Shown: positions 6,501 through 47,600 of the stretch, piece by piece
Layout of the letters: the number at the start of each line of letters is the position of its first letter
Position numbering within the stretch: the stretch's first letter is position 1
DNA from: Tubulanus polymorphus
Taxonomy: Eukaryota; Animalia; Nemertea
DNA length: 64,000 bases
Assembly: GCF_964204645.1 (NCBI RefSeq)
Contig: NC_134034.1
Location: 9,808,962 to 9,872,961, forward strand
Reading direction: 5' to 3'
The notes under the pieces: generated by a model
The model's input: only the letters and a program-made list of their open reading frames with translations
Database searches by the model: none
Told to the model about the DNA's origin: nothing
Made by a program: the position numbers and the translations under genes

Positions 6501-7782
6501 GGACTGCTCCTGATTGCCACAGTAGCACCACACACAAGAGTGGGACTGCTCCTGATTGCCACAGTAGCACCACACACAAGAGTGGGACTGCTCCCGATTG
6601 CCACAGTAGCACCACACACAAGAGTGGGACTGCTCCCGATTGCCACAGTAGCACCACACACAAGAGTGGGACTGCTCCCACAGTCAGCGAAGTATTGCCG
6701 TTTCTTTTTTTGTTCGTCTTTCTTTCCAGTATCTCATAAAGCCAGTCATATTATGCTTTCCACCAAATAATTTCGAACTTGAACTTTTAGGCCTCATGTA
6801 TGCTAGCCAGTAACCTAAAACCTGGCGCAATTTACCACCTTTTTGCCAGATCGCCGAGCCTACACAACAACAAAAAAATGCCCCGATTTGCGCTTCGAAG
6901 CATAAAAACAAAACGAAATTGTCGCCAAATGAATCGTAAAAACATCCCCGACTGTTTCATGTTTATTTTATACGCGTAGGGACCAGCTGTCATTCATTCG
7001 TTATATATCATTATTCAAATTCAAACAAAGTCAGATAGTCAATATATATATATATATATATATATATATCTATCGGTATATGTATTCCTGAGGCGTAAAC
7101 ACGCGATGAATCTACATCGTAAATTACATTATCAGCCGATCTCTTACTGCGGTCACGACGACATTGCTGACCTAACGGGCCGCATCGTTCCAAATCAAAC
7201 GGAAATTCCAAATCAAAAATTCAAAAAAATCCACAAAAAAAATCGGAAAACTCGAAACGATGAGGGGCAGGGAGGGCGAAAATGGATGGTGGTGAGGGTC
7301 GTAAGAAAACGACGCTATTGTTTTCCCTGACTTGATCGACTAAGAATCCAATCAATTCACACACAGTCCAATACATTTAAGACATAGACATGAACTGTTT
7401 GATCTTATGACCCGCGATCTCAACAAATTTCCCCGACTCGCAGCTTTTCTACGGAATTCCCAGACTTTTTTCAAAGAATAATCCCTGACCATTCCCGTTT
7501 TAATACCATCAAAGGCCTTGAAAAATATTTCCGCTCCCTCCCTCCCTCCCTCCCTCCCTCCCTCCCTCCCTCCCTCCCTCCCTCCCTCCCTCCCTCCCTC
7601 CCTCCCTCCCTCCCTCCCTCCCTCCCTCCCTCCCTCCCTCCCTCCCTCCCTCCCTCGTCGGTTTCACATACCTCATGCACAATCGATCGGTTATAGCTGA
7701 ATCGTGGGGTTATAATGAGCTCAACGCAACTAGAGTCACGAACATCATCCTGTTTATCGAGACCACATCATCAAAAATATAT

Positions 7783-13800: not shown

Positions 13801-16800
13801 ACGCGGGGATGGGTCGAGAATATTCACTCGCGAAACGCGGGGATGGGTCAAGGATATTTACTCTAGAAACGCGGGGATGGGTCGAGAATATTCACTCGCG
13901 AAACGCGGGGATGGGTCGAGAATATTCACTCGCGAAACGCGGGGATGGGTCGAGGATATTTACTCTAGAAACGCGGGGATGGGTCGAGAATATTCACTCG
14001 CGAAACGCGGGGATGGGTCGAGAATATTCACTCGCGAAACGCGGGGATGGGTCGAGGATATTCACTCGCGAAACGCGGGGATGGGTCGAGGATATTTACT
14101 CCAGAAACTCAGGGATGGGTCGAGGATATTTACTCCAGAAACTCAGGGATGGGTCGAGGATATTCACTCCAGAGACTCAGGGATGGGTCGAGGATATTCA
14201 CTTCAGAAATGCAGGGATGGGTCGAGGATATTCACTCCAGAAACTAAGGGATGGGTCAAGGATATTCACTCCAGAAATGCAGGGATGGGTCGAGAATATT
14301 CACTCGCGAAACGCGGGGATCAGTCGAGGATATTCACTCTAGAAACGCGGGGACGGGTCGAGGATATTCACTCGCGAAACGCGGGGATGGGTCGAGGATA
14401 TTCACTCCAGAAACTCAGGGATAGGTCGAGGATATTCTGATTAAAAGAGCATTTTAATTATCACATTCGTAAACGAAACCTGAGAGCACGATCAACTAAC
14501 TAACTACTTCTGAATGACAACTTCCTTTCACGACATTTCGCGTAAACACTTGGATCTAGTCCAAGAATCTACACGACACCTTATAATACATTATAATTTA
14601 CACTGGTTGACACCGACAATACAGAAATAGAGAATAACACCGTTAATAGAGAATATTATACCTAGACCCCCGGGAATCGCGGTAAAATGATCTCTTCTCG
14701 CTTTTCGACAAAAACAGCCGACCGACCGGATAGCACCTTTAAATTATTCTACGCTGGAGTAAGGCTGAAGGTTGCAGTCCCTAGGTTCATACTTATTTGA
14801 GTTCTTAGCCATCTAGGCCTTATTGATATTGACAGTGTCTGTAGAAGTTAGGCTCAGGTTCAAAAATGCACCTTTAAGTTACTGACCCATTCAGCGTACT
14901 GGTATCATCAGCAGGTTTGAGGTGTCTTTTATCTCTCCACACTCGAGCCCGCTATTCACAGCAGCACTTTAACCCTTTCAGTGCTGAATAATCAATACCC
15001 TATAGTGCTGGAGATAATTTGAAAATTTGAAAAAATTCCACCCTAGTGTGTTGAATAACGGGAATACCACTATAGTGCGTCTACACCGTAGCGCAGTGTA
15101 TCGTTAGTTACTAGTATTTCACTATGCTTGACAGCTGCTGCCATCTTCCAAGAGAGATAATTACTAATTACATCAATACACTGCAGTGCGGTGTACTAGC
15201 AAAATCTATCACTGATTCGTACACCGCACTGCGGTGTAGACGCACTGAAAGGGTTAAGGAGTTTCAAGGTTTCTCTTTTCCCTCAATTCGCTGTGGACAC
15301 TCAGGATAGGTCGCAAATTTTTCCTGCCACGAAACCGAGAGATGGACCTTTTGACCGTCAGGAAACTGCTTCCCGAATGAATCCAGGATTCCCGAGAGAC
15401 CAGTAACTCAAAGACCGGTACAGTATCTCATTAGACCTCGGTTTTAAGGCATATGGTCATTAAACCCGACCGACCACTTGGTTCTAAATGAAACGCTTAG
15501 ACAGGTTTTGATCCGTCTCTTCTGACATTTCAACGAAAATACGTTCAGTTGCGGAATAACACAATCGGTTATTTAACTTGATAAAAGTGCCTGATAGAGA
15601 GTTTGGTAGGTTTTGATCGGTCTCTAGCAATCAAGGAATTCTCTTCTGGGGCATTCGTTTCAACGAGAATACGCTCTACCTATTCCGGACTAACGTACTC
15701 TGTAGGCTTAAATCTGTTAGAAACAGCTGGTAGAGAGTTTGTAATCTGGAATTGCTCTAATCCTAAATCGGACTGTGTTAAATTTGAAACGTGACTTACA
15801 GTTGCAGTACGATAGAATACGCGTATTTACCTGAGTAGACTTATCGGTCATAACAAGCTGACAGTTTTGAAAACTCGGCCATTGCCCGGTGAGGTATGGG
15901 CCGGCGATGGCGTCCAACGAACCAGTGCGTTTAATATTACTGGGACTTGATCTCAATGGTTTCGGACGTTCAACTGAAATCAAACACAAATACATGAAAT
16001 CAATTTTACAAGTTAGTAATGACATAAGGCTCTTCAAATCCCTGTGATGGAGGATGTGTCTAATAGGACAGGGGTTTGTACTGTGACGGGAGTCTCATGA
16101 TGCCACCAGGTTCAAATCCCTGTGAAGGAGGATGTGTCTACTATGACAGGGGTTTGTACTGTAATAAGAGTCTCATGATGTCATCAGGTTCAAATCCCTG
16201 TGAGGGAGGATGTGTCTACTAGGACAGGGGTTTGTACTGTGACAGTCTCATGATGTCACCAGGTTCAAATCCCTGTGAAGGAGGATGTGTTTATTAGGAC
16301 AGGGGTTTGTACTGTGACAGTCTCATGATGCCATCAGGTTCAACTCCCTACGAGGCGACTTGAAGAGCCAGGCTAGCTGATGGGCCTGCGGCCAGACAGC
16401 TAATAGAGGCCTCTTTTTGGGACTGACTTTTTTCACTATTCAGGCTCCTGAGGCTATAAGCATCAACTGAGGATATAATGGACCTATTCCTCACACAAAC
16501 TCAGACCAAATAAAGTAACAAATCACTTCAGATAAAACGCAGGGTAATAGATCAGTAATGCCAGGATAGGCCTAAGGAGTTTTCAAAGAGAAAATTTCAA
16601 ATTTCAAGGAAAAGAGTTTCAAAGACTTATAAAGGCATTTTTCGTTTAAAAGTTTTTCAGGAATTGAGGAGTCGTCAGAACTGTATGCCAAACTGTTCCT
16701 TACAGGCATCACTCCACTTCACCAGAAACAACCGATGTCTTGTGTTGGAGTTTTCAGATTCGTCACAATGAAAGGGGCAGACTTAGGGTAGTCTCAGGGG

Positions 16801-18226
16801 TCCGGACCCCTACCTTCTCTTGTCGTCAAGACAGAGATTGTTATAGACTTAACCCTTTCAGTGCTGACTTAATAATACCCTATAGTGCTAAAGATAATTT
16901 GAAAATTCCACCCCAGTGTGTTGTGGCATGCTGCTAGGCTATAGTGCGTATACATCGCCATGCGGTGTATCGTTAGTTACTAATATTTCACTATGTTTGA
17001 CAGGTGCTACCTGCCATCTTTCAATGGAAAATAAAAACTAATTACATCAATACACTGCGATGCAGTGTACTAATGTCTATTTCAACCTGACTTGAGAGCA
17101 TTCCGGTTGGCCTAGCTCGCTCATTTTTGGTAGTAGCCTACATACCTGATAAAAGTCTTATTAGGACCAGAATGCATTGGCAGTCGACCTAAATCATCAT
17201 TTTTTAATCCATTTGAAACCGTATTGAAGGATATCCAAAAAGTCTTCACTGAAAGGGGTTAAATGAAGAGAAGTGACTCCATGATTTGAAAGTTTAACAA
17301 TATGTTTCCATGCCTACGTATCAAATTTCAGTTGGTAGGCATGGAGACATATTGTTTAACTTTCAAATCATGGAGTCTCTTTTCTCTCAGGAACCCCTCT
17401 CAATGCAGATTTTTTGGATATTCTACAATACAGTTTCAAATGGATTAAAAAATGATGATTTAGGTCGACTGCCAATGCATTCTGGTCCTAATAAGACTTT
17501 TATCAGGTATGTACTACTGAAACTGACTGAGCTAGGCCACCCTGTATGCTCTCAAGTCAGGTTGAAATAGACATTAGCAAAATCATCACCGATTTATACA
17601 CCACACTGCGGTGTAGACGCACTGAAAGGGTTCACCGGCAAATTCGAAACTCATCCTATTTCGAAAATTGCATATTTTCGGATTTATTTCTTGAAAATAT
17701 CTAGTAATGAGTGCTGGACTCGGCAAGTATCTTAAGCAGTGGCTGCTCTAGCTGATAAATGCCTTTTCTCTTCTTCCGCACCCCAGCCTTGCAAACATCC
17801 GAGATCCATCTCAGATTGTTGGAGAATATTACCTTTGATAACGTTAGCGGGTGAACTCGAACTTCTCGACGACGATTCGACCGCAGGACCGGATGTGGCT
17901 GCTGCCGGTGAAGACGTACCACCACAGCTGCGATGATTATCCGGCGGAGATCGACGAGGCGGCTTCGCGACGCGCTCCCACGGCGAAGCCATCGTCGGCG
18001 ACGACGACGGGCTGCCAACAACTACTTTTCGGCCGGCGTTATTCGTCGGGCCCGCGCGGCTCGACGTCGGGCCCGACACGCCACTGCCCTGCTGCATCAG
18101 CGAATGAAACTGAACGGTAGCTTTCATCGGACCCTGTTTACTACAGCTACCCCCAGCAGCTGATGACGACGAAGTCGACGCTGGGGACACATTTCGGCGC
18201 ACTCTTTGCGTCGGTAAATTTGACAT
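322..18226 (-). CDS. GLCCI1: FAM117/GLCCI1-family protein gene, 8 coding exons, ~500 aa
   Basis: Family motifs MKATVQF, RTGSLDAIAGPYLTGQWP, DKSTQT, HKRSAS, RQRLQRSK, SVEGLNQEIE, PDGHRAP, RSIDTQTP, SPRPNKSYSFGREPPDGCEKV and GSAFC. Exon lengths sum to 1503 nt with consistent phases. Probably co-orthologous to GLCCI1, FAM117A and FAM117B. Confidence 0.92.
895..1042 (-). CDS. GLCCI1: FAM117/GLCCI1 exon 7
   Basis: SPRPNKSYSFGREPPDGCEKV; ttttcag / gtaagt. Confidence 0.93.
1562..1808 (-). CDS. GLCCI1: FAM117/GLCCI1 exon 6
   Basis: EPTPDGHRAP...RSIDTQTP...KEIESK; atacag / gtacgt. Confidence 0.9.
2008..2289. mobile_element. MITE with CATGG TIRs and apparent 6-bp TSD (second copy 54412-54723)
   Basis: CTTAAG|CATGATTCCCACAG...CTGTGGGAACCATG|CTTAAG; the second copy is flanked by CTTTTC/CTTTTA. 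Confidence 0.75.
2640..2702 (-). CDS. GLCCI1: FAM117/GLCCI1 exon 5
   Basis: EIERLVLKNSHSGNDDIDLDR; tatttccag / gtgagt. Confidence 0.9.
2921..3084. mobile_element. Small MITE with GGGGTCATTCATTTATTAC TIRs (second copy ~25342-25505)
   Basis: ~25-bp terminal inverted repeats; two near-identical dispersed copies. Confidence 0.75.
3292..3580. repeat. 48-bp minisatellite, ~6 copies
   Basis: Unit GTCAGGTATCCACAATCCCTCACCCGCGAGTTCAGAATCCCCCGGATA. Confidence 0.95.
3588..3794 (-). CDS. GLCCI1: FAM117/GLCCI1 exon 4
   Basis: LYRQRLQRSKES...RGSVEGLNQ; gttgcag / gttagt. Confidence 0.9.
4690..5228. repeat. ~30-bp minisatellite, degenerating leftwards
   Basis: Unit ~AAGGTGGATAGTTTGGGACAGTTAGTTTCG. Confidence 0.9.
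5260..5355 (-). CDS. GLCCI1: FAM117/GLCCI1 exon 3
   Basis: TEDFEESVSEKVKKKHKRSASVGNIRENITLL; ttttcgtag / gtaggt. Confidence 0.85.
5499..5789. mobile_element. piggyBac-like MITE (family copy, orientation A)
   Basis: TTAA|CCCTTTCAGTGC...GCACTGAAAGGG|TTAA, with internal palindromes TACACCGCAnTGCGGTGTA. Confidence 0.85.
6177..6680. repeat. 42-bp minisatellite, 12 near-identical copies
   Basis: Unit ATTGCCACAGTAGCACCACACACAAGAGTGGGACTGCTCCYG. Confidence 0.97.
7535..7655. repeat. (CCCT)n microsatellite, ~30 units
   Basis: Direct reading. Confidence 0.97.
7962..8455. repeat. 107-bp tandem repeat, ~4.5 copies, with 214-bp dimer periodicity
   Basis: Identical spurious ORFs at 7992 and 8206, 214 bp apart. 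Confidence 0.93.
10402..11655. repeat. 34-bp minisatellite, ~37 copies
   Basis: Unit ACAGGGTCCCTACAGATCAGTCATTCCTGGATAT. Confidence 0.97.
12241..12420. mobile_element. piggyBac-like MITE, internally deleted copy (orientation B)
   Basis: Same TIRs and TTAA flanks. Confidence 0.8.
12764..14438. repeat. 34-bp minisatellite, ~49 copies
   Basis: Unit GGGATGGGTCGAGGATATTCACTCCAGAAACTCA. Confidence 0.97.
14969..15257. mobile_element. piggyBac-like MITE (orientation B)
   Basis: Same TIRs and TTAA flanks. Confidence 0.85.
15831..15973 (-). CDS. GLCCI1: FAM117/GLCCI1 exon 2
   Basis: RTGSLDAIAGPYLTGQWP...DKSTQ; gatttcag / gtaaat. Confidence 0.93.
16033..16350. repeat. ~80-bp tandem repeat containing a B-box-like GGTTCAAATCCC (related copies ~33985-34160)
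   Basis: ~4 units. Confidence 0.8.
16849..17634. mobile_element. piggyBac-like MITE interrupted by a foldback element
   Basis: TIRs at both ends; the consensus GTACTAGCAAAATC is split at TA by the insertion. Confidence 0.8.
17073..17574. mobile_element. 502-bp foldback (near-palindromic) MITE with TA target duplication
   Basis: TA|ATGTCTATTTCAACCTGACTTGAGAGCAT...ATGCTCTCAAGTCAGGTTGAAATAGACAT|TA; arms are complementary over ~240 bp. Confidence 0.85.
17833..18226 (-). CDS. GLCCI1: FAM117/GLCCI1 exon 1 (MSNLPTQRVRR...SPANVIK)
   Basis: ATG 18226, Ser/Pro-rich, AAG|gtaata donor in phase 1. Confidence 0.85.
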
Positions 18227-25063: not shown

Positions 25064-25173
25064 TCAGGACGTGTTGCTCGTGTCGAGGTCCATCGTTTCG
25101 GCGGAACTTCGCGCCGGGTCGAGGAATTTACTCGACGGTGAGGTAGATGATGAGTCATCTTCGTCTTCGTCCA
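25064..25173 (-). CDS. PRKAG: PRKAG terminal coding exon ([36 protein letters not shown])
   Basis: gttttcag acceptor, phase 1 entry, ends in a TGA TAG double stop. Confidence 0.85.
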
Positions 25174-28100
25174 CTGAAAACAACGACAAAATCGGTTAAA
25201 ATTCGAGCGTTAATTCGAATTTTCAAGATTTTGAACTCTCACAGGGTCACTAAACCGCTGAAAAATGCTAACGGTACGAATACAAATATTTCCAGAAATA
25301 TTTAATCCGAAAGTGAAAGAAATGTTCTAAATATTCGGTAAGGGGTCATTCATTTATTACGTACGCATTAGGGGAGGGGGAGGGGGGTCAGTGCAATTTC
25401 GTACTGTAATGCTTAATATATATGAAAAAATGGCCGATTTTGCGTACAGGGGGAGGGGGGTTGAAAAATTCAAATTTTATGCGTACGTAATAAATGAATG
25501 ATCCCTTAGCAATCATGGATAATAAGACCCTCGAAGACATTGTATGAAAATCTAAAACAACAGCTATTGTCTTTTTCGTTATGTTACGGGTTTAAAGGGG
25601 AACTGTAGTGAAAAATTTTTTGTATCTAGATGTGTTAGAAACCTTTATAAATACATTTTCAAAACAGCAGAAAAACATTTCATCCAATACTTTATCCAAA
25701 AAAGAGGGTTTTGTAAAGTGACTGGCCACCGCCATTTTCTCCAAGTAGCAGATGCTTTTCTCTCGGCTGTGATGTAGTTGCGGCCCACTTCGATACATGT
25801 TACTGCTGCTATTCATAGTGTTTTCATCACTTAAAGTTCATTAACAGTTCTAAACTGCAGCATGATGCCACATCAGCAATTATTTGGATATGTTCACACA
25901 GTGAGTGGAAAAATAAATGTAAAGTCCCCACTGGCAGCCCAGCAGGTATATTTTAATCGCAATTTTCAACTGAGATCTTCAATGAGTGTATCTATTTGTG
26001 TACACACTGGAGTGTGTGATGGTCCGGGATACGTCATCAATGTTTACATGCCTCGCTTTGGAATTAAAATATGGCGGCTCTCATCTGCCGTAAATTCTGC
26101 TGATAACAGTATCAAAATCGTTGTATACAAGTTTATTAGGAAGAATTGGAAGTTTCAACTACCATTATGCTAAACAACAACAGTAGAAATGAATGGCCAA
26201 TTAAAATTTTTCGACTGCAGTTCCCCTTTAAGAGCTTATTTGAAAAAACTTTGATTATGTGCATTATTTTTTTATCAAGGGGGTTAAACCCTCAGTAACA
26301 CCGTTCATATTGCTGTTCAATTTAATCAGTAATCAACAGTAAGACCCTCGGTAACATCTTTCATATTTCTGTTCAAATTAATCAGTAATCAACAGTAAAA
26401 CCCTCAGTTACATCTTTCATATTTCTGTTCAAATTAATCCGTAATCAACAGTAAGACCCTCAGTAACATCTTTCATATTTCTGCTCAAATTAATCAGTAA
26501 TCAACAGTAAAACCCTCAGTTACATCTTTCATATTTCTGTTCAAATTAATCAGTAATCAACAGTAAGACCCTCAGTAACATCTTTCATATTTCTGCTCAA
26601 ATTAATCAGTAATCAACAGTAAGACCCTCAGTAACATCTTTCATATTTCTGCTCAAATTAATCAGTAATCAACAGTAAGACCCTCGGTAACGGCTTTCAA
26701 AGACGAGCCCGCGGGTCGACGTTGTTTAACTCACATTTCGGATTAAGCACCAGGAAATTCAGAAGATCGGACAGCGATAAAATTCCGACGACTTTTTTCT
26801 CATCGTCGACTATCACCAGACGATGTACCTGCAAAATAAAAACACATAAATACATGATCGATAACAATCTTCAACGCGGCTTTGTTTTAGCCGCATTAAC
26901 TCGTTTGCGACTATAAGTGACGCCAGTCACACGTGATTTATTTTTCGCAACACGACGCGACCATCTCCCCCGGTCTAACCGGGCGGCCACTTATATTTGA
27001 CTCGCTATTTCCCCGACTATTCCATGACATGCACAATACTATCCCCGCGTCTATATCGTCAAATACGACAGACATTGATGGAAACTGTTTGATCTTATGA
27101 CGCGCGATCTAGTAATCTCAACAAATTTCCACGACTTTTCCCTGAATTTTAGCTTTTTCGTCAAAATTCCCCGACTATTCCCTGTGGCCCACCGATCAAG
27201 GTTTCAACGAAAGTTGCTACCATTTTTTTTCCTTCTAAAGCAACGTGCGTGCAACTCAAGATTTCAGATATTCGACGTACCTCCGCTTTGACTATTCTCT
27301 CTAACGTAGCTGCCAATGTTTCCGATAATTTGCAAACTGCCACTCCTTCGAAAGACCCCTAAAAGAAATAATTCGAAACGCGTTCAGCGTCGATGGTCAT
27401 CATTCCGTTAACACAGCCGCACCTATTAATCGATTCTCATTGTTTTAAACCCATTCGGCGTACCTACGCTTAATATCAAAATTATCTCCAGGGTCCAGTT
27501 TCACAAAAAAGTTAAACTAAAATTTTTGGTGTAATTGCCATTGGTTCCTTTATGTTTTCATTGAGGACAACAATTCGAACTTAACCGTTTTAGGCTTAAA
27601 CTTTTTCGTGAAACCGGGCCCAGCACTTTTAGAAGTTGATTAGTCAGCATTGGAAGGGCGGTTAATTATCACGTACCTCTTTGGAGCGATGTTGTAAGGC
27701 CTGTTTAATCGTCACGTCTAAGTTGTTATAAGTCTTTTCAGCAGCTAAATTCTGAAACGGAGTATAAATTCACCGATCAGGAAAAATCATGTTCCAAAAA
27801 GTACAAGTTTTGGCAACAGGGGTGGAAATTTTTTCTAAGTTTTAATTAACAATATGAGGACATCGATAAGTCAGCACTGAAAGGGTTTTAACTGATTACT
27901 TACAATGGTATCAAATTTTGCATAAATATCGACGACGCGTCCGTGCTCGTCGACTACGGGCAACGCTGAAACTCGCCTCGCGACGAATAAACTTAAAGCC
28001 TGGATCAATGGCATATCCGGCGTCGCCTGCAAAACCGTTAAGAGAAATAATTAAACTCTTTCCCGACGAGCAGACAGGGGATGGAATCAATTGCCGTTGA

Positions 28101-31100
28101 AACTAACCGTGGCGATATTTTCGTATGTTCCTATTCGAAGTTCGCCTAAAGTTTTCTGTAGAAAGTTCGGAAGCGGCAATTCGTGTATCTGCAATGAAAA
28201 CGAACATTCATCGGTGTTAATCGCCAAATACAGAATGGTGTGCAGTTGGACATTGAGGATATCACTTGTGGCAATTGAGGATCCACCAGGTGTCACTAGT
28301 CTGCAGTAGGACATAGAAGATTCCACTTGTGGCAAGTGAGGATCCACCAGGTGTCACTAGTGGACAGTAGGACATAGAAGATTCACCTTGTGGCAAGTGA
28401 AGATCCACCAGGTGTCACTAGTCTGCAGTGGGACGTAGAGGAATTAACTTGTGCCAAGTGAGGATCCACCAGGTGTCACTAGTGTACAGTAGGACATAGA
28501 AGATTCATCTAGTGGCAAGTGAGGATCCACCAGGTGTCACTAGTCTGCAGTAGGACATAGAAGATTCACCTAGTGGCAAGTGAAGTTCCACCAGATGTCA
28601 CTAGTCTGCAGTGGGACGTAGAAGAATTCATGTGTCAAGTGAGGATCCACCAGGTGTCACTAGTGGACAGTAGGACATAGAAGATTCACCTTGTGGCAAG
28701 TGAAGATCCACCAGGTGTCACTAGTCTGCAGTGGGACGTAGAGGAATTAACTTGTGCCAAGTGAGGATCCACCAGGTATCACTAGTGTACAGTAGGACAT
28801 AGAAGATTCATCTAGTGGCAAGTGAGGATCCACCAGGTGTCACTAGTCTGCAGTAGGACATAGAAGATTCACCTAGTGGCAAGTGAGGATTCACCAGGTG
28901 TCACTAGTCTGCAGTGGGACGTAGAAGAATTCATGTGTCAAGTGAGGATCCACGTGGTGTCAATAGTCTGCAGTAGGACATAGAGGATTCCACTTGTGGC
29001 AAGTGAAGATCGAACATCGAAAATCAAGGATGACAGGCATGCTACCGAGTACTTACATAAAGATAAACAAATCTCAGAATTCGTTTGTGCGTCAACACGT
29101 AGAGGGCGTTACCGGTCACCGGGTCGATTACGGGCAGACGATGTACTTTACAGTCGATGAGTTTTTTGATGGCGTCGAATAAACAGGCGTCCGGGTGAAT
29201 GTAAATAAACGGTTTCGAGTGATCCTTTAGAGCATCTGAAAATACAAACAAATAATCTATACAATACAACGCTGGGGTGGCGAAACACCTCACGCAGGGC
29301 GGTCACTTTCCACCCATTAACAAACAAAGTTCAACTGCAATCTGCATTTCCGGGAGCGTCTGCTCACGGTAATTCATAATTTCCATAAAACTGCCGCAAA
29401 TAAAAAGACATCTAAACCTCACCTTTCCACGTAACGATTTTGTGTTCTTCCAATTCTTCCATTTTCACCTAAAAATAGAACGACAGATCGAAATGAAATT
29501 TCCGCAACTACAAATATCGAGACGCACAATCAATCACCGCTAAGCATAAACGGTTCCTAATCAATCAATGAATCAACGAATCAAAGAATCAGATCCGGTT
29601 ATTTTTTCGCGTTCAGAAATTATCAATTTTTCTAATCGAACGGAAAAAAAAATTCAAATGAAACTTCAGCAAAATCAACAAAGCTACAAAAAACCACGAC
29701 GATATCATGATAGAAGAAACAATAAGAGTCCCGATCAAGCGGAGGAGAGGGTGGGGTGGGGGTTTAACTTCTAAAACTACGAATACTTCGGGCGCAGACT
29801 TTTTTTCGGGTTATAATGGGGAACCGCAACACCTACTATCCCACCAGATGGCGTAACGAGCACTCCGTCTTTCGTTGCGAAAATAAGATCCGTCATTGAT
29901 CAACTTTGATCCGAATTATTAGCTCATCATGAATCCATACGTTATTACAAGATGCACCACCAAAAATCAACATTTGAATTCCTTTTTCTACTCAGTGATT
30001 GGTAATAGTTTTTGAAATTATTCATCGATCTAAGAAAAAGGTTCATTTGATTTCAGCTGAAACGTAGACGAAATTGATCACGAAAGATCGAGCAACTACT
30101 GGCGACACCTGGCGGATCGCCGATCGCCACCTGAAGTGTTGGTGGCACCTCCTCGCAGTCATTAATCGGTAAACAGTTGTCGGAAATCTATTTCAATCGT
30201 AGCTAAGAAGAACGAAACAGCCGAACATGCACAAAAATCATTCACAGGCTACCACACAACGATATTTACCTACTACACAATTTTACCCCGGTTCATCGTT
30301 CATCATTCAGACGTGGTTACCACATTCGCAATTCCGTTCTCTTTTCACCGGGGACACGCAGAGGGTGGTATACTAGGGTTCTGATTCTGAACACTTCAAA
30401 GAGGGCGCCGGTTGAGCCGATCGCCTCTGGATTAAGCTGATCCGTATTTGACTAGCGGTAATTTCGAGATATTTTTTGCTTAGATTTGACATTTGCTGAG
30501 GCATTGATTTCAGGTATCACCCCTTGTAGGGGCGTGGGTTTTGTGCAAGTAAGGGGTGATATACATTCTGGTATTTCAGGGGGGAAACCGCGGTCGAGCT
30601 CGGATTGGTGTATGAATCATTGAGATAAAGATGAGAGATGGCCTTACCTGCCAGGGACTGCGTCCGGAGATCGCATCCGTCGTGTCAGACGCCTAAACAA
30701 AACACATCGTTAGTGACTAACCGATTGTACGGGGGAAACTACACAGCGAGGATGGGTATGTCGTCTGCTGTGTTACATCGATCCGCTGGTTCTAATAACT
30801 GTGTTTAAGCGATAATCTCGCGGGCGGGGTTTGGGGGATCGTGGGTTTCATAAAAACAATCAAATCGATTATTACGATTTAACCCTTTCAGTGCCGACTA
30901 ATTAAAAGTACTGGAAATAATTTTTAAGTTTTCACAAATTCCATTCCGGTGTGTTGTATAACAGGCATACTACTTGTAGTACTCATTACACCCACTACAC
31001 CGCCATGCGGCGTATCGTTAGTTACTAATATTGCACTACATTCGACAGGTGCTGCCATCTTTAAATAGAGATAAAGACTGATTACTAATATTATCAATAC

Positions 31101-34100
31101 ACCGCGGTGCAATGTACTATTACCGATATTTCATGTTTGATAGGTGCTGCCATCTTTCAATCGAGGTAAAAACTAATTACTAATAACATCGATATACAGT
31201 GATGCGATGTTTTAGCGTAGTCCATCACGGATTGTAAACATCGCGTTGCAATGTGCTAGCATAATCCATCACGGATTGTAAACACCGCGTTGCAATGTGC
31301 TAGCATAGTCCATCTTTGGTTGGAAAACCGTAGTGCGATGTACTAGTGTAGTCCATCAAAGACCGTTAACATTATAAACACTGCACTGAAAGGTTTAAAT
31401 TGAACTGAATCCAGTAAAGAAATGGGTCGATTCGAGATGTTCTTTATGAAACCAGGGCCTTGGCGGCTTTTTAAAAATTGACGCCTGGCTATAGTGTCGA
31501 CCAATGAACTTAATCCGGGCCAGCGTGGGTCGGACTTGCAACTGCGATTCTCTTGACCGTAACCCGCCCATATATTGCCAGTCGACCTGCGCTCGCGTCT
31601 CAAGTCCACCATTGTACAACAGCCATTTTGGTTAATGTTGTTGCCCGGTCCAAATTAACCGATCTACGATTCGTAGTTGATTTGTTATAGACGGAATTTT
31701 TCCTCAAAACATTGATTCTAGTTTCAACTCCCCGCTAAACCATGTATACACACTACACAATGAACGGCACGACACGTAACAAGGAGGGAGCACCGGAAGG
31801 CGATTATAGCTAACTAAACAACATAAGCCGCGATGAAGTTTTTTATTTTTCGGCGTAGTTATTTCGAACCAGCGAACCATATAACGAAGCAGACGCCATG
31901 ATAACGAACTACAACAACTGCGGTGTATAGGTGGGGGTGATGATTATAGGGGGAGGCTGGTTTCATGGATACGGGCGCGAGGGAGGGAAGGGCAAATTAA
32001 CCCCCCTGCCCATTAGGAATATATCAAGATTCTTCGAAGATATTCCAACGTAAATTGGTCGAGATATTTTGAAGGTATTTCGATAACTTCAAAACCCGTT
32101 CCATGAAACCGTTCCGCCGCCCAGGGGGCAGTTTGTCAACGATCTATCACAATTTCGATTCTAACTTTTTGCAGGAATAACGATCAGTAAACACGGAGCC
32201 CGGAGAAATAATGCTTGGATCACCAAAGCCCTGTTAAATCATCGCGTTACCTTGAGGACCAGCTATTTTCAAGAAACAATACTATAACAGGGAATGACAA
32301 TACCAGCCAGCTATTCCACCAGGTGGCATGGCGAGCACTCAGTCTGACAATGCCGGAATTAGTTCAATTTAAGTTAACTTCGAACTTTTAGATTCCTGAA
32401 TCAAAACATACTCGGATATAGGCATAGTTTTCATTGATATCTGATTTAAGAGAAAATTTCATTCTATTTCAACTGAAATGTGCAAGAAATTGAACGCCGA
32501 AGACCGAGTAACTACTAGCGACACCTGGTGGATCCTCACATGCCACAAGTGGGATCGGGGGTTCCCCAATGTTTTTGTGCAACGGATAATGATCGATAGC
32601 TCTTAAAAGACACAAAGTTAAAATCGAAATGGAAAATATAACTCGTCGATATTTCGTTGAAAAATTGCGACGTTTAATACGCGAGTTGGAGCTGGGTTTT
32701 TTTTTATTCCTTTTTTTACGAGTGGGTAAAGAAAAGAACGATAAAATAGATGCAGGAAAATTAACAACTACTAAAATTGAACTCAATTAGAAAACAGTGA
32801 ACAACCGGAACAGAATACTACAGTAGACCGCGTTCACCTCGGAGTAGATCATCGCTCCGGTTATTGCGCGAGCTCCAGAAAAACATGATATTAATTTTCT
32901 TACTCCGATTCATTGCGACGACGACGCAAACCGCCGCAAATTCGAATCCCCGGAATTACGCGGTAACGCGCGAGATACCGAGGCAAACGCCGTCTGCCGT
33001 ATTCATCAAACTCGAACCGAAACCAAATTTTCAAACTCGAACTGAAGTTAACGCAATTAGCTTTTTAACCCTTTCAGTGCTGACTAATCAATACCCTATA
33101 GTGCTGGAGATAATTTGAAAATTCTAAAAAATTCCATCCTTGTGTATTGAACAACGGGAATACCACTATAGTGTGTCTACACTGCGGTGCGGTGTACTAG
33201 CAAAATCTATCACTGATTTATACACCGCACTGCGGTGTAGACGCGCTGAAAGGGTTAAGTCATTATCAATTTGCGAGTTTTTCACTGGCTTCCTATCATG
33301 ATTTCGAAGTACGATCTGCCTACACGGGTCACATCTACTCACCATAGATGAATCATAGGAGCGAACGAAATGGAAACTTTCCCAAATTTCAATTAGTTAC
33401 AAAGATTCCTAATCCCACATTTAGAATATGAGTCTGAAAATTTCCGAGCTAACATTTTTTTCGACGTAAGGTTAGAAATAATTGATACCTCGTTTCTTAT
33501 TTATGCCGAGCTAGAAAGTTGACCCAGTCGGCCGCCTATCTACCCCGTACATTACCTTTTTTTTTCAAAATCGAGATCAAGCTAACAGTAACAGGCCTGG
33601 CAGTTATAGAAATGAACTGACGACAAAAGTGACCCGGAAAAAGGTATCAATTTTTTTAGCCTTACGACTACATCCTTATGGTTGTCTTCAGGAATACTGG
33701 TGTGTATTAAGAGTTGAGATGTCAGACAGTAGGCAGATAGCATTCAGCAGTGAGTGTCAGACGTGAAACACAATAGCCGCCATATTTCTACATTATAAGC
33801 TGTTGTAGGCTTCGGAAGGAATGGAAACCCGACAGAGCTCACAATGCTGCTCCGTTGCAATATTGTCATCACTATTTGCGCTATAGTTGTTTCCAATTTC
33901 AGGAAAAACACAAGATCGCCATTTAAGCAGAGAAATCTAGAGTTTTGAAACATATCAGCTCTGTACTTTCCAACATGGCAGAGCCATCGGGTTCAAATCT
34001 CTGCAAGGGAGGAACGTGACCGTCTCATGATGCCAGCAGGTTCAAATCCCCGCGAGGGAGGAACGTGGCATAAACTCATCAGGTTCAAACCCCTGCGTGT

Positions 34101-37100
34101 TACCCTCGCTCCGAGGGAGGAACAGGGCAGAATCTAACGACGCCATCAGATTCAAACATCTTCTAAGCGGTAGGATGCAACTATCCGATGGCGTTTGGTT
34201 TTTGCCCGACGACATTTTCTAATATCTCTTCGTACTCATTCTAAACACCGACATAATTCATCGATACCTACGCGACTGGTGTACGCTCACTTACCAGGGG
34301 AGACTTGTAATATTTTTGAAGTATATTGATGAAGTCAGTGATTGTTAGCATGCCTGAAAATCAGAGACAAAAAAAATTCAATTTCACGACAATACCCGTA
34401 GGGTATTCGTCATCGATACACAGTCCGAGTCATCTATACCAGCCCCCATCACGATGGATATATTCCCCTTACTACGAATTACCCAAGTTTTCCCCGATTC
34501 TTCCGTGTTACGACAAAAACTTCCCTGAGGGAATCTTTTCCTGGTTTTAAAAATGTTATAATTCATTCATTTTTCATTGAATCACGTATTGATAAAGAAA
34601 CACGCGTAGTCAAAAGCATCATCAAAATTCCCTGAGTTTTCCAGGTTTCTTTATTTTGCAAATATTGTCAAATTCCCAGATTTTTTTTCTAGATTGTTCT
34701 GATTCCTAGAGTTTTCCGGGTCAGTGGCGCCACTGATTCTTACCGACGAAGTGTTGACTCGTGCTATCCCAGAGTGGCGCGGCGCGTACGCCGTTATAGA
34801 CAAGCGCAAAAAATGCTTTTTTAACCTGAAAAAAGACAAAAACGCGATTGAATTATAACCTACACGACAACCGTATATAAATGATCATCACACCGGTTCG
34901 AACCTGTTATCCCCATTTACTTATCAATAGCGATGTCAAGCAGGTTGCATGTTACTTCTGGTTAGGGGTGGTTAAGTGGGTAGTATTCACGGTGGGCGCT
35001 GTGTCTCGAGACTGCAGGGATATGTTTGAGCGATGTGTCCAGGGCTTCAGAGGTAGTTTCAGCAAATATGTCTAGGACTTTTAGAGGTCCTTTTGGGCTA
35101 CCGCTTGTGTCCAGGACTTAAGAGGTACTGTTGGGCGATGTGTCCAGGGCTTCAGAGGTAGTTTCAGCGAATATGTCTAGGACTTTATAGGTACTTTTGG
35201 GCTACCGCTTGTGTCCAGGACTTTAGAGGTACTTATGGGCAATGTGTCCAGGGCTTCAGAGGTAGTTTCAGCGAATATGTCTAGGACTTTATAGGTACTT
35301 TTGGGCTACTGCTTGTGTCCAGGACTTAAGAGGTACTTTTGGGCAATGTGTCCAGGGCTTCAGAGGTACTGGTATTGGGCATCTAGGGTTTTAGACGTTC
35401 ATGTACTTCGAGGAAATTCATCTGCGGCTTTCGAGGGGCTTAAGTAAGAGGTACTTATGAACAACTAGTCAATGTGCTGGTCTACTGGGGCCGGTTGTGA
35501 AGTCATGGCTTAGTCTAAGACTGACTTAGTTCTATAGCTAATCCAATAACATAAGACCACTTTCGGACTGTAGTCACGACTGCGCAACTGGCCGCGGGTG
35601 AAATGTACATCTGCCGGTGAAGACACTTACGTTTAGTTGAGTATCGAACACGACAAGTTTTGAACTGGTTGGAATTAAGTCGTAACATTTATGAGCGCGT
35701 GTGAACTTCGCGAAGACTTGCTCTAGATTTTCATCTGAAAAAAAGATGAAAAAAAATTCAACGACAAATATTCAGATCAGAAATATTTCCGATGAATTTT
35801 TCATAAAAATGTATTTTATGAAGCCTAAACTTCCGAGAGATTTGAATGACTAGACGAATTTTCACTTTTTATCGATCGTTAGATCTTTATGTGCTTCAAA
35901 TTAACCCTTTCAGTGCTGACTAATTAACTAATTAAAAGCGCTGGAGATAATTTGAAAATTCCACCCTGGTATGTTGAATAACGGGTATACCGCTATAGTG
36001 TCTACACCGCAATGCGGTGTATCGTTAGTTACTAATATTTCAGTATGTTTGACAGGTGCTGCCATCTTTTAATACAGATTACAACTAATTAATAATAACA
36101 TAAATACATTAATACACCGCCATGTGGTGTATTAGGAGTCAATCACTGATTTATACACCGCCACACGGTGTAGACCCGCTAAAAGGCTTAAGAGAAGTTT
36201 TCAAGGAATTGAGTAGTATTTGAATGTAGCGATGAACTGAATGGTTAAGATATTCTATTTACCGGTCAAGACCGATTAATATTTTGGATCACTTTCTCTG
36301 TAAAATTTGCTTGCGCTACGAAACTTTACAGCTTAAGTTTATAGCCATTCGAGTTAACTGTTGTGCATTCAATTTTAATTACCTAGGTCTTCGATTTCCA
36401 TATTTTGCATATCTGATTCCAGGCTGCATATCTGAAATAAACGATATAAAGACAACCTTGAAATAACCAACAGGCAAACGAATAAACAATCAATCATTAT
36501 AGCGCGCTGACTTATTTGGGTCAGGAACGTTTTCAATGCTCGTGGGTATCGAAGACACCTGTTTATAGATATGGGCAATTAAAATCATACGTGCCGCACG
36601 AGGAGTTGCGTACCTGCCACGTAAAGAACTGCACCAGATGGTAAGACTTACTACACGTTTTAAGGCAATGAAGGCTCCGGCAATAGAGGATTCTACTTAT
36701 GACAAGTGAGGGTCCACCAGGTGTCGCCAGTGTGCAGTAGGACATCAATAACTGCGGCAATACAGAAAAGTGGCAAGTGAGGATCCACCAGGTGTCGCCA
36801 GTGTGTAGTAGGACATCAATAACTGCGGCAATACAGGATAGTGGCAAGTGAGGATCCACCATGTGTCACCAGTGTGCAGTAGGACATCAATTATTGCAGC
36901 CATAGAGGATTCCACCTGTTGCATTGAGGATCAACCAGGTTTCGCTAATTGGGTAGTTGGATATCAACTAATGTCGCAATTAGGGGAGTCCATTTGTGGT
37001 ATCGGAAAGTGAAGATCCACCAGGTGTCGCCAAGATTCAAGTGCATCAGCAGTGGAAGTTTTCAGCATGGATGTGTAGCGAGGGTCCACCAGGTAGAACT

Positions 37101-40100: not shown

Positions 40101-43100
40101 TTTTTGGGTAAATTTCAAAGGAAAAAGTAAATCCAAATGGGTTATGATAAGGGCCAGAAAAGCCTTTTTGTCCCAATTGTTCTGCAGGAGGGCCACCAGA
40201 AGCTAGACACAAATTTTCATGCTTGCAGCCCTCGCATAGGATTGCTGAATATGCCCTTTTCAAATTAAGTTTTGCACATTCCTATATTCAGGTCCATATC
40301 CATCAAGGAATCGTAGATCCGCGCTTGACTCACGAGTTGAAATATTGAAAATTAATTAATCTTTAAACTCGAGAGTTTTTATCGAACTCGCAAAACTGCG
40401 GAACTGGGTCCAAGTACTATGAATCACTTTGCGCGAGATTGAATAATTTGTAGACAATATTCCAATCGCGATAGGCACAAAAAATTCTCAACAAACAGCC
40501 ACCAAATTTTGCGAAGAAAGAAATAAAATCATATTTTTTACAATTTTGGAAAGCGTAAAATATGATAATTCAAGCGAAATTTGGCCATTGAAGAAGAAAA
40601 ATTTGAAAAATTTTAATCTACGCGACCGTAGCATTTCTGTCTCCAAAAAGATTTCAGATATCAGAATTTTTAGTCTACAATCTGCGAGTGGGATTTCACC
40701 ACCTTACTCATATTTCAAGTGGGGTGATTTTTTAGAATTCTTGAAAAAGAACTAGAATTCTGAAAAATCGCCCATTATTTTTTGCCGAACCAATTGCCAA
40801 CCTTGAGGGCACTATTCTCTGATTTCATGTCGAATCAAGACCGAGGACCAGTCACACATTCTTCATGGCTTAGATTTAAGACTGGATATAGAACCAAAAT
40901 GAGCTCGGAATGGAACAATCTAACAACTTAAAACCAGTCTGTGCTCGTTTCGGTTCTGTAGCCAATCTAGCAACTTAAAACCAGTCTAAGCTCATTTTGG
41001 TTCCATAGCCAATCTAGCAACTTAAAACCAGTCTAAACTCATTTCAGTTCAATGACCAATCTCACACCTAACAACCAATTTTAAGAGTTTAAGGCCGCCT
41101 TTTGAACTTAAGTTTAGTGGTGCGAAAGTGGTCTTAAATCTCAAGACTGGTCCAGCTATAGAACCAACACGGTCTTAGACCGGTCTTAATTCTAAACCTA
41201 TCACTATCGAACCGGCCGTCGGTTCGTCAGGTTGAATGGAAAAAAAGAAGAAATACTTTTCCGAAGTGTGGAAGCCATCATTACCTCAAACCCTAGAACT
41301 ACATTCACTAATAAGTCGTTAAATAATCAATATTTCGACACGGTTAATTACCCAGTCCAGGTTATATTTACTGCTTACAGTACAAAACATGAAATACTCT
41401 CACGCCAAACATAAACGCATACACTACATATCTAATCAGTTGGCTCAGCGCCAAACGGAATTGATAAATAAATTATGTTGATAAAACGAGAATATGTTTT
41501 TAAACCAAACACTACTCGACAGACTAGACACTAAAGAGCGGGCGCGGGTACTCGAGGAGGTAAAACGCACGCCGCTGCTGATAAACCTGTGATAAACCTC
41601 TTCAGAGGATTACCACAGTGATTGATGACGGAGTAAAATGTGATTCAAACGCATCCATGAAATTCTCGGGATCCGCTTCATCGACTGGCCGATCCAGGGT
41701 TCTTACGAGACCTCTTTAAGACCGTCAAAATTTCCCTATTAGCATAGGGGGCATTTTAAGCAGTCAAGGGCAAAATATTATCACTACAAAAAAAAAAGAT
41801 TTCAAAACAGTGATTTCTGTAATTGGAAAACTGAGGCACAATTTTGTCGAATTTCTAGAAAATCGTATTTTCCTTTGCGAACGCCCTTTTCTCATGAAAT
41901 GGCCGTACGACCCTTAGATCTCAGATCGGCGACCCTCAGATCTCGCCAGCAGGTGAATCCGGGCTTCATGGCTATTGAATCATATTAACATCATCGGTGT
42001 TATCACCAGCAACGGGTTTTAAAGGGTTAACATATATCAACAGCATGCCTGAAAACCAAGGTAAAACGAAAGTCCGTTCCGTCGGGATATTGCTAGTTAT
42101 GGGTTATAAGTACGAAAAAAATTAAAAGATCTAATCCACAAGAGCTTGGAATTCAAAGTATGGGAATCTATTCGATATATCCGAGATATTTCGATCGGAA
42201 AATGACGCGCGCAATTTTTAATCGCGCGAAATTCTGAAAATCGTTCGCGTCATTTTCTAACGCCTTATCGCGACATCTCGAGTTTTCCACACATCCTCCC
42301 TCGGCAGGGATTCGAACCCGATGGCATAACTCAACTCGGCCACGACACAAAACCCTGCCTAGACAATAGACCCGGTGCGCAGCTTAGATGATGTCATTAT
42401 TAGCCAATCAGATATGACGTTTTATTTGAGCCCAGGTTTTCCATTTATAGTTTATCAGTGAAATCTTCCTCAGCAATTATACAACGAGCAATCTGATTGG
42501 TGCAGCAAGTTTTCCTGCGTTTAACCTGTGCATGTACCTGTACACCCGGTCTAGTGCGGCAGGCTGAGTCTAGCAATGGTATCAGGTTTTAATCCCTGCC
42601 GAGGAGGGATGGACATTCCAATTTCCGCAAATCATTTTCAACCTTCTCCTTAATCAATAATTCATTAGAAACAGAATTTCCTTATTAACCATATTCAAAA
42701 AAAAAAGAAGAAAAGAATCAAGAAACGTAATGAGAAAATGAACTAAAAAGAAAGTAGAATAGATGTAGGGTTTAGTGATATATGATACGATATTAATATT
42801 AATCCCTATAAATCTCTCTCCGGATAAGATTATATTGAAACTTACAAAAACATCATCATCACCCTAAAAATACACACAGTTTCAAAATGAAATTTCGATG
42901 AAAATAATCATCAAATCTGACGAATCTGGGGTCATATTAACCTCTTCAGCGCGTCTACACCGCAGTGCGGTGCATGGACATTGCTAGTACACCGTATCGT
43001 GGTGTATAGGTGTAATTAGTTTCTATATCTTTTGAAAGATGGCAGCACCTTGAAACATAGTGCAATAATGGTAACGATACACCGCACCGCAGTGTAGAGG

Positions 43101-44590
43101 CACTAAAGCGGCATGCGAGCCTAAAATAGGTAGAAGTATTCTTCCTGGAACATCATCCTAACAGATTGTCATCGTTAACCTTTTCAATGCATCTACACCA
43201 CAGTGCGGTGTATAAATTTAAAAGTGATGAATTTTTTTAATCTCCATTGAAAGGTGACAACACTGTAGAATAGTAGAGTGATGATACACCGCATAACAGT
43301 GTAGACATTCAATAGAGGTATGCCGGTGATACAACGCACTGGGGTGGAATATTTTCGGTGGTATTTCGATCTAAATAATTTAGGGGGGTATGGCAAAAGC
43401 CCTACAAGTCTATAGCCACCATCATACGGAGACAAAACTGGCTTGGATCGGCTTGGCCCGTGCTGAATTAGACGGCGCGTTCACATGTAAATCACTCACT
43501 CGATACAGAAACGCAATAATTTGACCCACGCTTAAGTTTGGCACGGACCTGGAACGACATATTTGTGGGCAAACAGGCACAGACCCATTTGGCACTCGCC
43601 TAATCTTGCACGAGTCGATAAACCTTGTGTGGTCGCAGGTCACAGAGAATACTGAATTTGGGATGTCGGGTGTGTGAGTGTCACATGCAAATCAAATTAA
43701 ACATCTGTTCTTCTACTGTTTGAACCCCTATCACTATCCCGACAAACCCCTATCCATAAATAACGTTGGAACTTTGCCAGAGCGCTCTCCGTGGGCCGGC
43801 TTAATGCGATTATTATCAAATTTATGATGAAATCGAATTCTCGAGAGGGAATCTTACACTCGATGTTTGTAACGGGCTACGAAATGCTAAAGAAATCATA
43901 ACACGCGATAAACGGCTGCTGTGCGCGCGGGTCGGCGATTGTCTGAAATTAATCGGAAAAGAAATTTAATTCCGCAAAATTGTGTTTCCATGGTTCAATT
44001 CAGGGGCTTTCTTTCAAATGCCATATTTTGGGCGTGTACCCGTCCCTGAATCAGACCTTATAGATCACTGTCCCTCGGCTTTCTGATTGAATACCACGCC
44101 AAGCGAGATCAATTTCAATCTATCCGATCAATAAATAAAACGATTTTCCATAAAATTTCTAAGCAATATGTAAAATAGGAATAGTCGCCAATTTTAGACC
44201 CCTCTCCCTGAGGAGGCGAACCTACATTAAGCCTCAAACCTCAATCGATAAAAAACATCGAACCCTCCCCCTCACGTGGATTACATTTCTGCTCAACTAA
44301 ATCGGGAAAAATCATTACTATTTAGAATGGGCGTAAAAAATCTTCCGCCCCGTTGCCAAGCAACGCGTAGTCTGCCGCGTTGCGCAGAGATCGCCCGTAT
44401 TAGGAAAGAAACGCGGCAGGTATCGTTTTTATCGACGAATACATATACAGCGACGTCGGCGGGTATGTGTGCGTTATACCGCTGCCTGATTTCACCGCTG
44501 ATTCCGTCCAGCTGTCACGCCGACCCTGGCAAGCTACCGATGACAACAGTGTCGTTTACAAATGATCGATTATAATATAAAGGGAACTAT

Positions 44591-44645
<55 letters not shown>

Positions 44646-47600
44646 AGAATTTGCATTTCCCCAGTGGGGGCAGTGTCGAGATTTCATGAGGTGCTGCTAT
44701 TAATAATGAAAGTGAAATATCTAATAAGAATAACTATCTAATAAATACCTAAATCAATCAGAAGGCTAATAGTCAAGGGAAGTAAGATCAGTAATCAACA
44801 GTAAGACCCTCAGTAACTTTATATTTCTGTTGAAATAAATCAGGAACCAACAGTAAGACCCTCAGTAACATCTTTCATATTTCTGTTCAAATTTATCATT
44901 AATCAACAGTAAGACCCTCAGTAACATCTTTCATATTTCTGTTCAAGGGGGCTAAGCCCTCAGTAACACCTTTGGGTAAGACCCTCAATGATATATTTTG
45001 CATTCGTAGAAATGTCACCAGGGCACTGAACCAAAGTGTCGGTAAAAGGGTGAATTTCTTTCCAAGAAATTTTCACTACAATATTAGAGAAATGCTGAAA
45101 TTAATCAGCAATCAAGGTAGGGAAGGTAACTCACTATAACTCATAACCAACTAGAAATCATTCATTTTTACAATAGGAGGAAAAACTTGTTACAACTTTG
45201 AAAAGTATACAACGATAAATCGGGAAAAACTCGAAATCATTCATCAGGGTCTAACACCTGCAGTAAAGGTCACCCTTCCACTGTGTGGCGCTAGTGTTAT
45301 TAAAGGATAGTGTTATGGTTAGGATAACGTCGTACAAAACAAATAAGGGACGCCTAAACTGTAGTCGCTCCATTCATAGATATTTTCGAGGTGGTGTTGA
45401 TTTCTCTGAAGTCGTCGTTCTAAAAATAATGACCGTTCTGTTCGGTGCTTGTATTCGTTATTACTCGGTGCGTGTATTCGTTATTACTTGGTGCGTGTAT
45501 TCGTTATTACCAGGGGTTCCGTTTCGTAGACCGGTGGCGACATCGATCCAGGGTAATTTTCGAGAGACTTTCTCGAGTTGCACCGGTCGATGAAACCAAT
45601 CCCCGGGAATGATTTCATATCCACACGAACGGGAAACTTCCCCAAATAAACATTTTAAAAAATAGCAACCGGGCCGAAAAGTCAAACCAACTATAGCCGA
45701 ATGATTTAAGCTCGCTCTAAAATTTAAGCCCATTTACTTTTTAAGAGCAACCTTTAAAGCCTTTTTTTGAAAATCTATTGTGGCAAGTGAAGATCCACCA
45801 GGTGTCGCTAGTCTGCAGTAGGATATCAACTATTGCCGTAACAGAGGATTCCTTCGGTGGCAAGTTATAATCCACCAGGTGTCTCTAGTGCGCAGTAGGA
45901 CATCAACTACTGTGGCAATAGAGGATTCCACCCGGTGGCGGTAATGTACATAAAGCTAACTCAATTGAAAATTGACTAAATGTAGATGGATAATGTTCTA
46001 TTACTGTAAGGTGTAAGGCACGCCATCTGGTGAGATAGCTAGTATGTCCTACTGTTTTGATGCGCCATCTGGTGGTATATCTAGCAAGTATGTCCTAGTT
46101 TCGCCATCTGGCGGGATAGTTGGCGACACAGTCATCGAGAGGCCTGTCGTTCTTCGGACTAGATTAGTTTGACCGTCGGAAACGTTACTGTGGTTGGGGG
46201 TGGGGTGTACAACACACTGTGACCTACCAGATACTAAACTACTATACTGAGATACTGATATAAGATATACACACACACACACACACATATTGACACTTAC
46301 CACTTCACCACTAATTGTATTAGCACGTGGCCGGTGATCGAAGAACTGCGGATTCCGATAACGCGGATCGTATAAAACATGTCCGACGCGTTCACCGGGC
46401 GATCGGTGTCCTCCTCCGCCGGGACTGTTACCCTGACTACGCGGGCTATCACCGGCGCTGAATCGCTGGTACAGCTTATCGACCGGCACGCCCATCGGAC
46501 TGCGCGCGGCTTTACGCGTCGTCGCTGCGGGCGCCGCGCCGTCGACCGTTCGTCCTTCGAGTATCTGGCTCATCGGCGTCGGCGTTTTCGGACTCGTACA
46601 CGGGAAGTCTAACATTTTATTCGCGCTGGTCGGACTCGGCGAGCTGCCCGCGCTGGTCGCCACGTTGTTCTTCTTGCCCCACGAGCCCGAACGCGGCCTG
46701 TGCGAACCGGCGAACTCCGGGCTGTTCATCAAATTATCGTTCTGCAAACTCAGCTTCTTTTTCGCCTTCTGACTACGAAACGAGTCGAACAGATTTTTCA
46801 CCTTGTTGCCGCTCGGCGACACGATGACCTTCATCGACTCGTCCTGCGACTTGTGGCGCTGGCGATTTTTCGGCCGCACGAGGTTTTTGATGCCGCCCGA
46901 ATTCGAGCGCGGGCGGTACGCGCCGTCGACGAAGTCCGCCGCCGTGTTATTTGGTTCGCCGGATGTGTCCGATTCCAATAGGGGCATAGCAAAGTGACTT
47001 AAATCCTAAAATGTAAAATTTTTTCATTATATACTCGGGTGGGTTTGTCGCCCTCTAATAAGCACCAATACGTAAATAAACCCGGTTTATTTCATTAATC
47101 CGTTAAAAACTATCAAACCATTCCCGTGTTCAGGCGATAGTGCTGCGCCCTATCGTCTAAACCTCAAACTACGAAAGTATGACCCGTTAAAATGAAAATC
47201 CAATCGCGAAAAATTAAAGGGCACTTTTATTCCTTCCACCCCCCAACTATTCCAACATACACGGAAACTGTTTGATTTTACGCCCGATTTAGCTATATCT
47301 ACAAATTCCAACGACCATTCCCTGACATTAAAAAAAAAGAAGACATTTCCCAGACCTTTCCCAGATTTCCAGGTATAAGTGGCAACCCTGAAAATTATAT
47401 ACATACATTGATTAAACTACTAGCGCAATCTATTGTCTAAATCTATTACTAATAAACGGCAGGAACAAACACCAAATAAAGGGTTAACTACTGGGTAGAT
47501 TTCCCTTGGGTAAAGCATCAACTCGAGTATATGTTGGAAATGCATCTCGAATAAGTAATAGTAATACAGGGCTGCCCAAATCATAAACGTGTTATTAGTA

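Follow-up and report, generated by a model that had tools for sequence, protein, structure and literature searches.

The window considered here, that is, the whole 64-kb stretch of Tubulanus polymorphus DNA that was analyzed, carries on its minus strand the gene LOC141911886, which encodes a PRKAG2-like AMPK gamma subunit. The initial annotation had read the gene as AMPK gamma, and this identification was borne out both by the presence of a CBS-repeat core orthologous to PRKAG and by the RefSeq proteins, which mapped back onto the window. A profile search matched the exon chain to XP_074659072.1 (isoform X2), one of the five RefSeq proteins in the LOC141911886 cluster, and Pfam recognized nothing but CBS in the worm protein. 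The mapped proteins place a disordered N-terminal extension in a 705-nt exon (47005 to 46301, phase 0 at both ends) and, downstream of it, an 18-nt phase-0 cassette microexon (42863 to 42846), a 43-nt Ser-Pro-rich exon (39675 to 39633; ISPSSSPR...), an 83-nt linker exon (37471 to 37389), and a 49-nt exon (36431 to 36383) ending in the conserved MEIEDL that precedes CBS1. The location first proposed for the microexon, between the 705-nt exon and the CBS core, is therefore correct, with the last three small exons also lying before the core. The coding exons of the CBS-repeat core and of the C terminus, mapped from the RefSeq proteins and by Pfam, span 25067 to 35734 and comprise 35734 to 35631, 34825 to 34744, 34353 to 34295, an optional 30692 to 30648, 29468 to 29423, 29235 to 29057, about 28188 to 28108, 28026 to 27904, 27751 to 27677, 27358 to 27281, 26828 to 26735, and 25173 onward. 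The optional exon of the core is 45 nt long, frame neutral, and skipped in RefSeq isoform X3; at its place, Lineus and Pomacea have unrelated inserts.

The 5' part of the gene is variable as well. RefSeq mapping locates alternative first coding exons at 55619 to 55368 (isoform X4) and at 61501 to 61409 (isoform X5), while the first exon of isoforms X1 to X3 was not found within the 64-kb window. A possible further alternative first exon on the same strand (43858 to 44007) is covered by an RNA contig over 43886 to 44007; it has an ATG at 43899, 14 residues, and a donor at 43858, with no depth in the bin below, and is absent from all five RefSeq proteins of the cluster. This arrangement suggests that the candidate exon would give a short isoform. 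An exon homologous to the 705-nt exon was found across lophotrochozoans, and its first 10 residues (47005 to 46976, minus strand), which we take to match a segment of human PRKAG2, are nearly invariant across spiralians and may represent the most conserved motif of the tail. As for the long open reading frames at 3200 to 3860, 6050 to 6770, and 12700 to 14440, their repeated translations indicate that they are by-products of tandem repeats and not genes.

The microexon reads GGT GAT GAT GAT GTT TTT, is flanked by the acceptor tatttttag and the donor gtaagt, and encodes GDDDVF (residues 361 to 366 of isoform X1). The sequence originally given for an isolated, frame-neutral 18-nt exon was exact, and RefSeq annotates the same coordinates, which rules out an artefactual exon. 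Alternative splicing, also claimed at the outset, is supported by the RefSeq predicted models, from which both inclusion and skipping are known: isoforms X1, X3, X4, and X5 include the microexon, whereas X2 is without exactly those six residues. The microexon is thus real, optional, and already present in the public predicted annotation. Among the public RNA contigs mapped to 42700 to 47100, one of 3,057 nt (run X1) spans the large exon and stops matching the genome precisely at the 46301 donor, as expected of spliced RNA; the junction check therefore succeeded for this donor, the 18-nt exon itself being too short to be placed. With a length within 27 nt, canonical splice sites, frame neutrality, and models of both inclusion and skipping, the feature has the properties of a cassette microexon. 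Furthermore, it resembles the eMIC/SRRM4-dependent neural microexons in length, in frame preservation, and in the long AG-exclusion zone, which is 51 nt upstream of the exon. However, different from those microexons, for which UGC and a branch-point consensus are typical (PMC8797185), the Tubulanus exon lacks both a CUAAY branch point and a UGC close to its acceptor; in particular, no TGC occurs within 40 nt of it and no CTRAY lies upstream, so that the eMIC-dependent signature is incomplete.

The encoded peptide represents a candidate linear motif. GDDDVF conforms to the D/E-D/E-V-F consensus and is identical to residues 140 to 145 of human SPRED2, the core contacting RSK2. A PDB search with the 26 residues around the exon returned, as the sole match, the SPRED2 peptide bound to RSK2 in 8EQ5; the likeness (EVGDDDVF versus ELGDDDVF) is longer than the minimal motif, at a non-significant E value of 0.85. 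In 8EQ5, DDDVFT is the only ordered part of the SPRED2 peptide, and a 12-mer starting with GDDDVF binds RSK2 at 36 uM (PMC10248553). The motif lies in a disordered region of the AMPK gamma tail, as had been supposed, since the AlphaFold pLDDT is below 50 over residues 352 to 401. Moreover, the worm RSK gene, with exons at 30,644,125 to 30,644,900 of contig G000:C1, retains the KAKLGM loop, which an intron interrupts, and residues equivalent to W252, F259, F268, R300, F303, K304, R305, and N306, but none equivalent to N307. Because the core is identical to that of SPRED2, the site is disordered, and the pocket of the worm RSK is kept, weak binding of RSK by GDDDVF in vitro appears plausible.

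Like the motifs of SPRED2, GAB3, FGFR1, CNKSR2, and GTSE1, the one in the tail sits in a disordered context of a signaling protein that has RSK-type substrate sites, and the genome encodes an RSK whose pocket is intact. It is possible to hypothesize, as the initial annotation did, that splicing switches RSK recruitment to AMPK. [quoted passage not shown] The identity with the ordered core of the SPRED2 peptide, the low pLDDT of the surrounding residues, the retained pocket, and the optional nature of the exon are all consistent with such a switch, and this part of the proposal stood; the expected conservation and the support from the phosphosites did not. As regards conservation, the motifs of SPRED2, GAB3, FGFR1, and CNKSR2 are reported to be evolutionarily conserved and come with binding data, whereas the candidate motif of Tubulanus is known from one species, in an optional microexon; the validated cellular DDVF motifs had in fact been chosen as evolutionarily conserved (PMC11984722). 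The same work bears on the statement that SPRED proteins bind RSK by DDVF, which holds for SPRED2 but not for the family in general, SPRED1 and SPRED3 being without the motif (PMC11984722).

The upstream exon had been credited with four RxRxxS/T sites, and exactly four were counted (S161, S178, S233, and T355 in isoform X1 numbering). Such sites occur at 3 to 7 per tail in all 35 of the aligned orthologues, including every one without the DDVF motif. Being ancestral and present in every orthologue examined, they lend the motif no support, and the fact that the phosphosites are older than the motif speaks against a switch built around it. The tail as a whole recalls the long isoforms of human PRKAG2, which likewise combine several first exons and a CBS core with a disordered tail rich in Ser-Pro and basophilic sites but, unlike the Tubulanus gene, have no known DDVF microexon. 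Regulation of the human gamma2 tail involves phosphorylation and 14-3-3: the tail binds 14-3-3 via pT97/pS122 and has mTORC1-sensitive SP sites (PMC13142926, PMC11879883). The 14-3-3 sites may be created by autophosphorylation or by other kinases (PMC13142926, PMC11879883), and a contribution of kinases other than AMPK would suit the RSK hypothesis.

For the comparison among lineages, we fetched 292 AMPK gamma proteins with a CBS core, a redundant set with many isoforms per species that covers more than 40 named species of molluscs, nemerteans, arthropods, a brachiopod, and a bryozoan. Only the four Tubulanus inclusion isoforms presented [DE][DE]VF in the tail, and none of the 287 non-Tubulanus orthologous proteins or isoforms had a strict DDVF there. 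The check for DDVF in orthologous PRKAG loci thus failed in every other lineage reached, and a conserved RSK site common to lophotrochozoans is ruled out. For the close relatives (other Tubulanus species and palaeonemerteans), neither the protein search nor the metagenome scan gave a usable orthologue; the contigs of run X6 gave no match either, and a pattern search for relatives combining splice sites and motif gave three matches, all of them GC-rich chance matches.

Within Nemertea, Lineus is only distantly related to Tubulanus. In Lineus longissimus, the same phase-0 intron hosts a 27-nt cassette microexon encoding FQFPSVPYQ (L022, 38938 to 38964), which is skipped in the RefSeq isoform X2, and a second Lineus-like worm, known from a metagenomic contig, has FQFPNLPYQ between the same splice sites (L004, 4072 to 4098). 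The Lineus longissimus microexon shares with that of Tubulanus the intron, the phase, the cassette type, and the skipping in one RefSeq isoform; different from it, however, both its DNA and its peptide are unrelated, with no acidic residues and no DDVF. A hidden DDVF microexon in Lineus was also considered and rejected, since the corresponding introns contain no such codons in any plus-strand frame. At the protein or transcript level, other optional inserts were found at the junction in Biomphalaria (LSVLRQ), in Mytilus (FASLIQ), and in a cephalopod-like transcript (10 residues); those of Biomphalaria and Mytilus may be either cassette exons or products of alternative acceptors. Judging from these sequences, one intron of spiralian AMPK gamma appears to be a repeated host of short optional inserts of unrelated sequence. 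Both microexons of the FQFP[SN][VL]PYQ type have a second, inner acceptor in tandem, 6 nt farther downstream. In a possibly annelid contig (L027), the intron holds three or four tandem exon-like copies of 48 to 51 nt, of the xxPYPPSPLLDKR type (11207 to 11257, 14589 to 14636, 16666 to 16713, and 18024 to 18071), which could be mutually exclusive exons.

The orthologous slot weighs against the RSK hypothesis, as it holds an unrelated conserved peptide in the Lineus-like worms, and the motif is missing from all the other lineages reached. A functional RSK switch, if there is one, would therefore be confined to the Tubulanus lineage, and a selected function of DDVF in the AMPK gamma tail is doubtful. 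In its most specific form, in which the ancestral slot would have been refilled in the Tubulanus lineage with a bona fide SPRED2-like docking motif, so that exon choice decides RSK docking to AMPK and its phosphorylation, we consider the idea rather unlikely.

The microexon could also have arisen by young or near-neutral exonization of a short, T-rich intronic stretch of GAT repeats, with no function of its own, being tolerated because the frame is kept inside a disordered region. The low complexity of its DNA, the lack of likeness to the Lineus microexon, and the missing UGC and branch-point consensus of eMIC-regulated neural microexons (PMC8797185) would agree with such an origin. However, the strong splice sites together with the 51-nt AG-exclusion zone, the inclusion of the exon in four of the five RefSeq models, and the conserved peptide in the homologous slot of the Lineus-like worms argue against it, and we judge it improbable.

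We favor, at a rough probability of 0.55, the reading in which a cassette microexon that varies among lineages tunes a disordered phosphoregulatory tail, the DDVF match being incidental. Between its large RxRxxS/T exon and the exon rich in Ser-Pro, lophotrochozoan AMPK gamma has, in a phase-0 intron, an old and variable splice slot, which the lineages fill with unrelated peptides of 6 to 10 residues. In Tubulanus, inclusion would change the distance from the basophilic site T355 to the Ser-Pro cluster that begins at S368 and place three negative charges in between. Such changes in spacing and charge could affect how the tail is phosphorylated and how it binds 14-3-3, a role that is documented for the tail of human gamma2. 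The likeness to DDVF is probably incidental; GDDDVF may have a weak affinity for RSK in vitro and yet not have been selected for docking. Counted against the tuning of the tail are the SPRED2 match that extends beyond the minimal motif, the circumstance that the motif makes up approximately the whole exon, and the excess of GDDDVF in the genome described below. Moreover, genuine docking motifs are often restricted to a single paralogue or lineage, as with SPRED2 in comparison to SPRED1 and SPRED3, and for this reason a lineage-specific RSK function is possible.

If the RSK hypothesis were true, RSK would have a docking site on an AMPK subunit, and a DDVF motif would be switched by splicing; we found no description of either. 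Our literature search returned nothing that connects RSK with the AMPK gamma tail and nothing on this microexon. Were the motif functional, ERK-RSK signaling would be tied directly to AMPK, the energy sensor, under the control of splicing, and a docking motif would have originated within a microexon, though in a single worm lineage that has received little study. Should the motif not be functional, what is left is more modest, namely, an optional RefSeq exon in an intron that repeatedly hosts unrelated short optional inserts.

The frequency of the motif helps to put the match in perspective. DDVF-like matches number 222 in human proteins, 67 of which dock in AlphaFold (PMC11984722), and three viral DDVF proteins showed no RSK binding when tested (PMC8812568). 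In the part of the human DDVF screen table that was available, no AMPK gamma subunit is among the entries, which counts against the RSK hypothesis. Assuming 500 to 2,000 microexons and a tail-like composition, we roughly estimate a chance expectation of about 0.02 to 0.3 DDVF-bearing microexons per genome, a rate at which one such case is no surprise when many genomes are scanned. In the Tubulanus genome, about 13 distinct sites code for GDDDVF, compared to 4 to 6 for look-alike control peptides, a mild excess; several of these sites fall in short frames or repeats. Furthermore, we could notice a transposon-like repeated reading frame that contains GDDDVFT in a basic, Ser-rich N-terminal stretch and occurs in at least four copies (L037, L043, L045, and L052; contigs C1, C3, and C4 of G000). 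A mobile element bearing an RSK-docking-like motif is conceivable from these reading frames.
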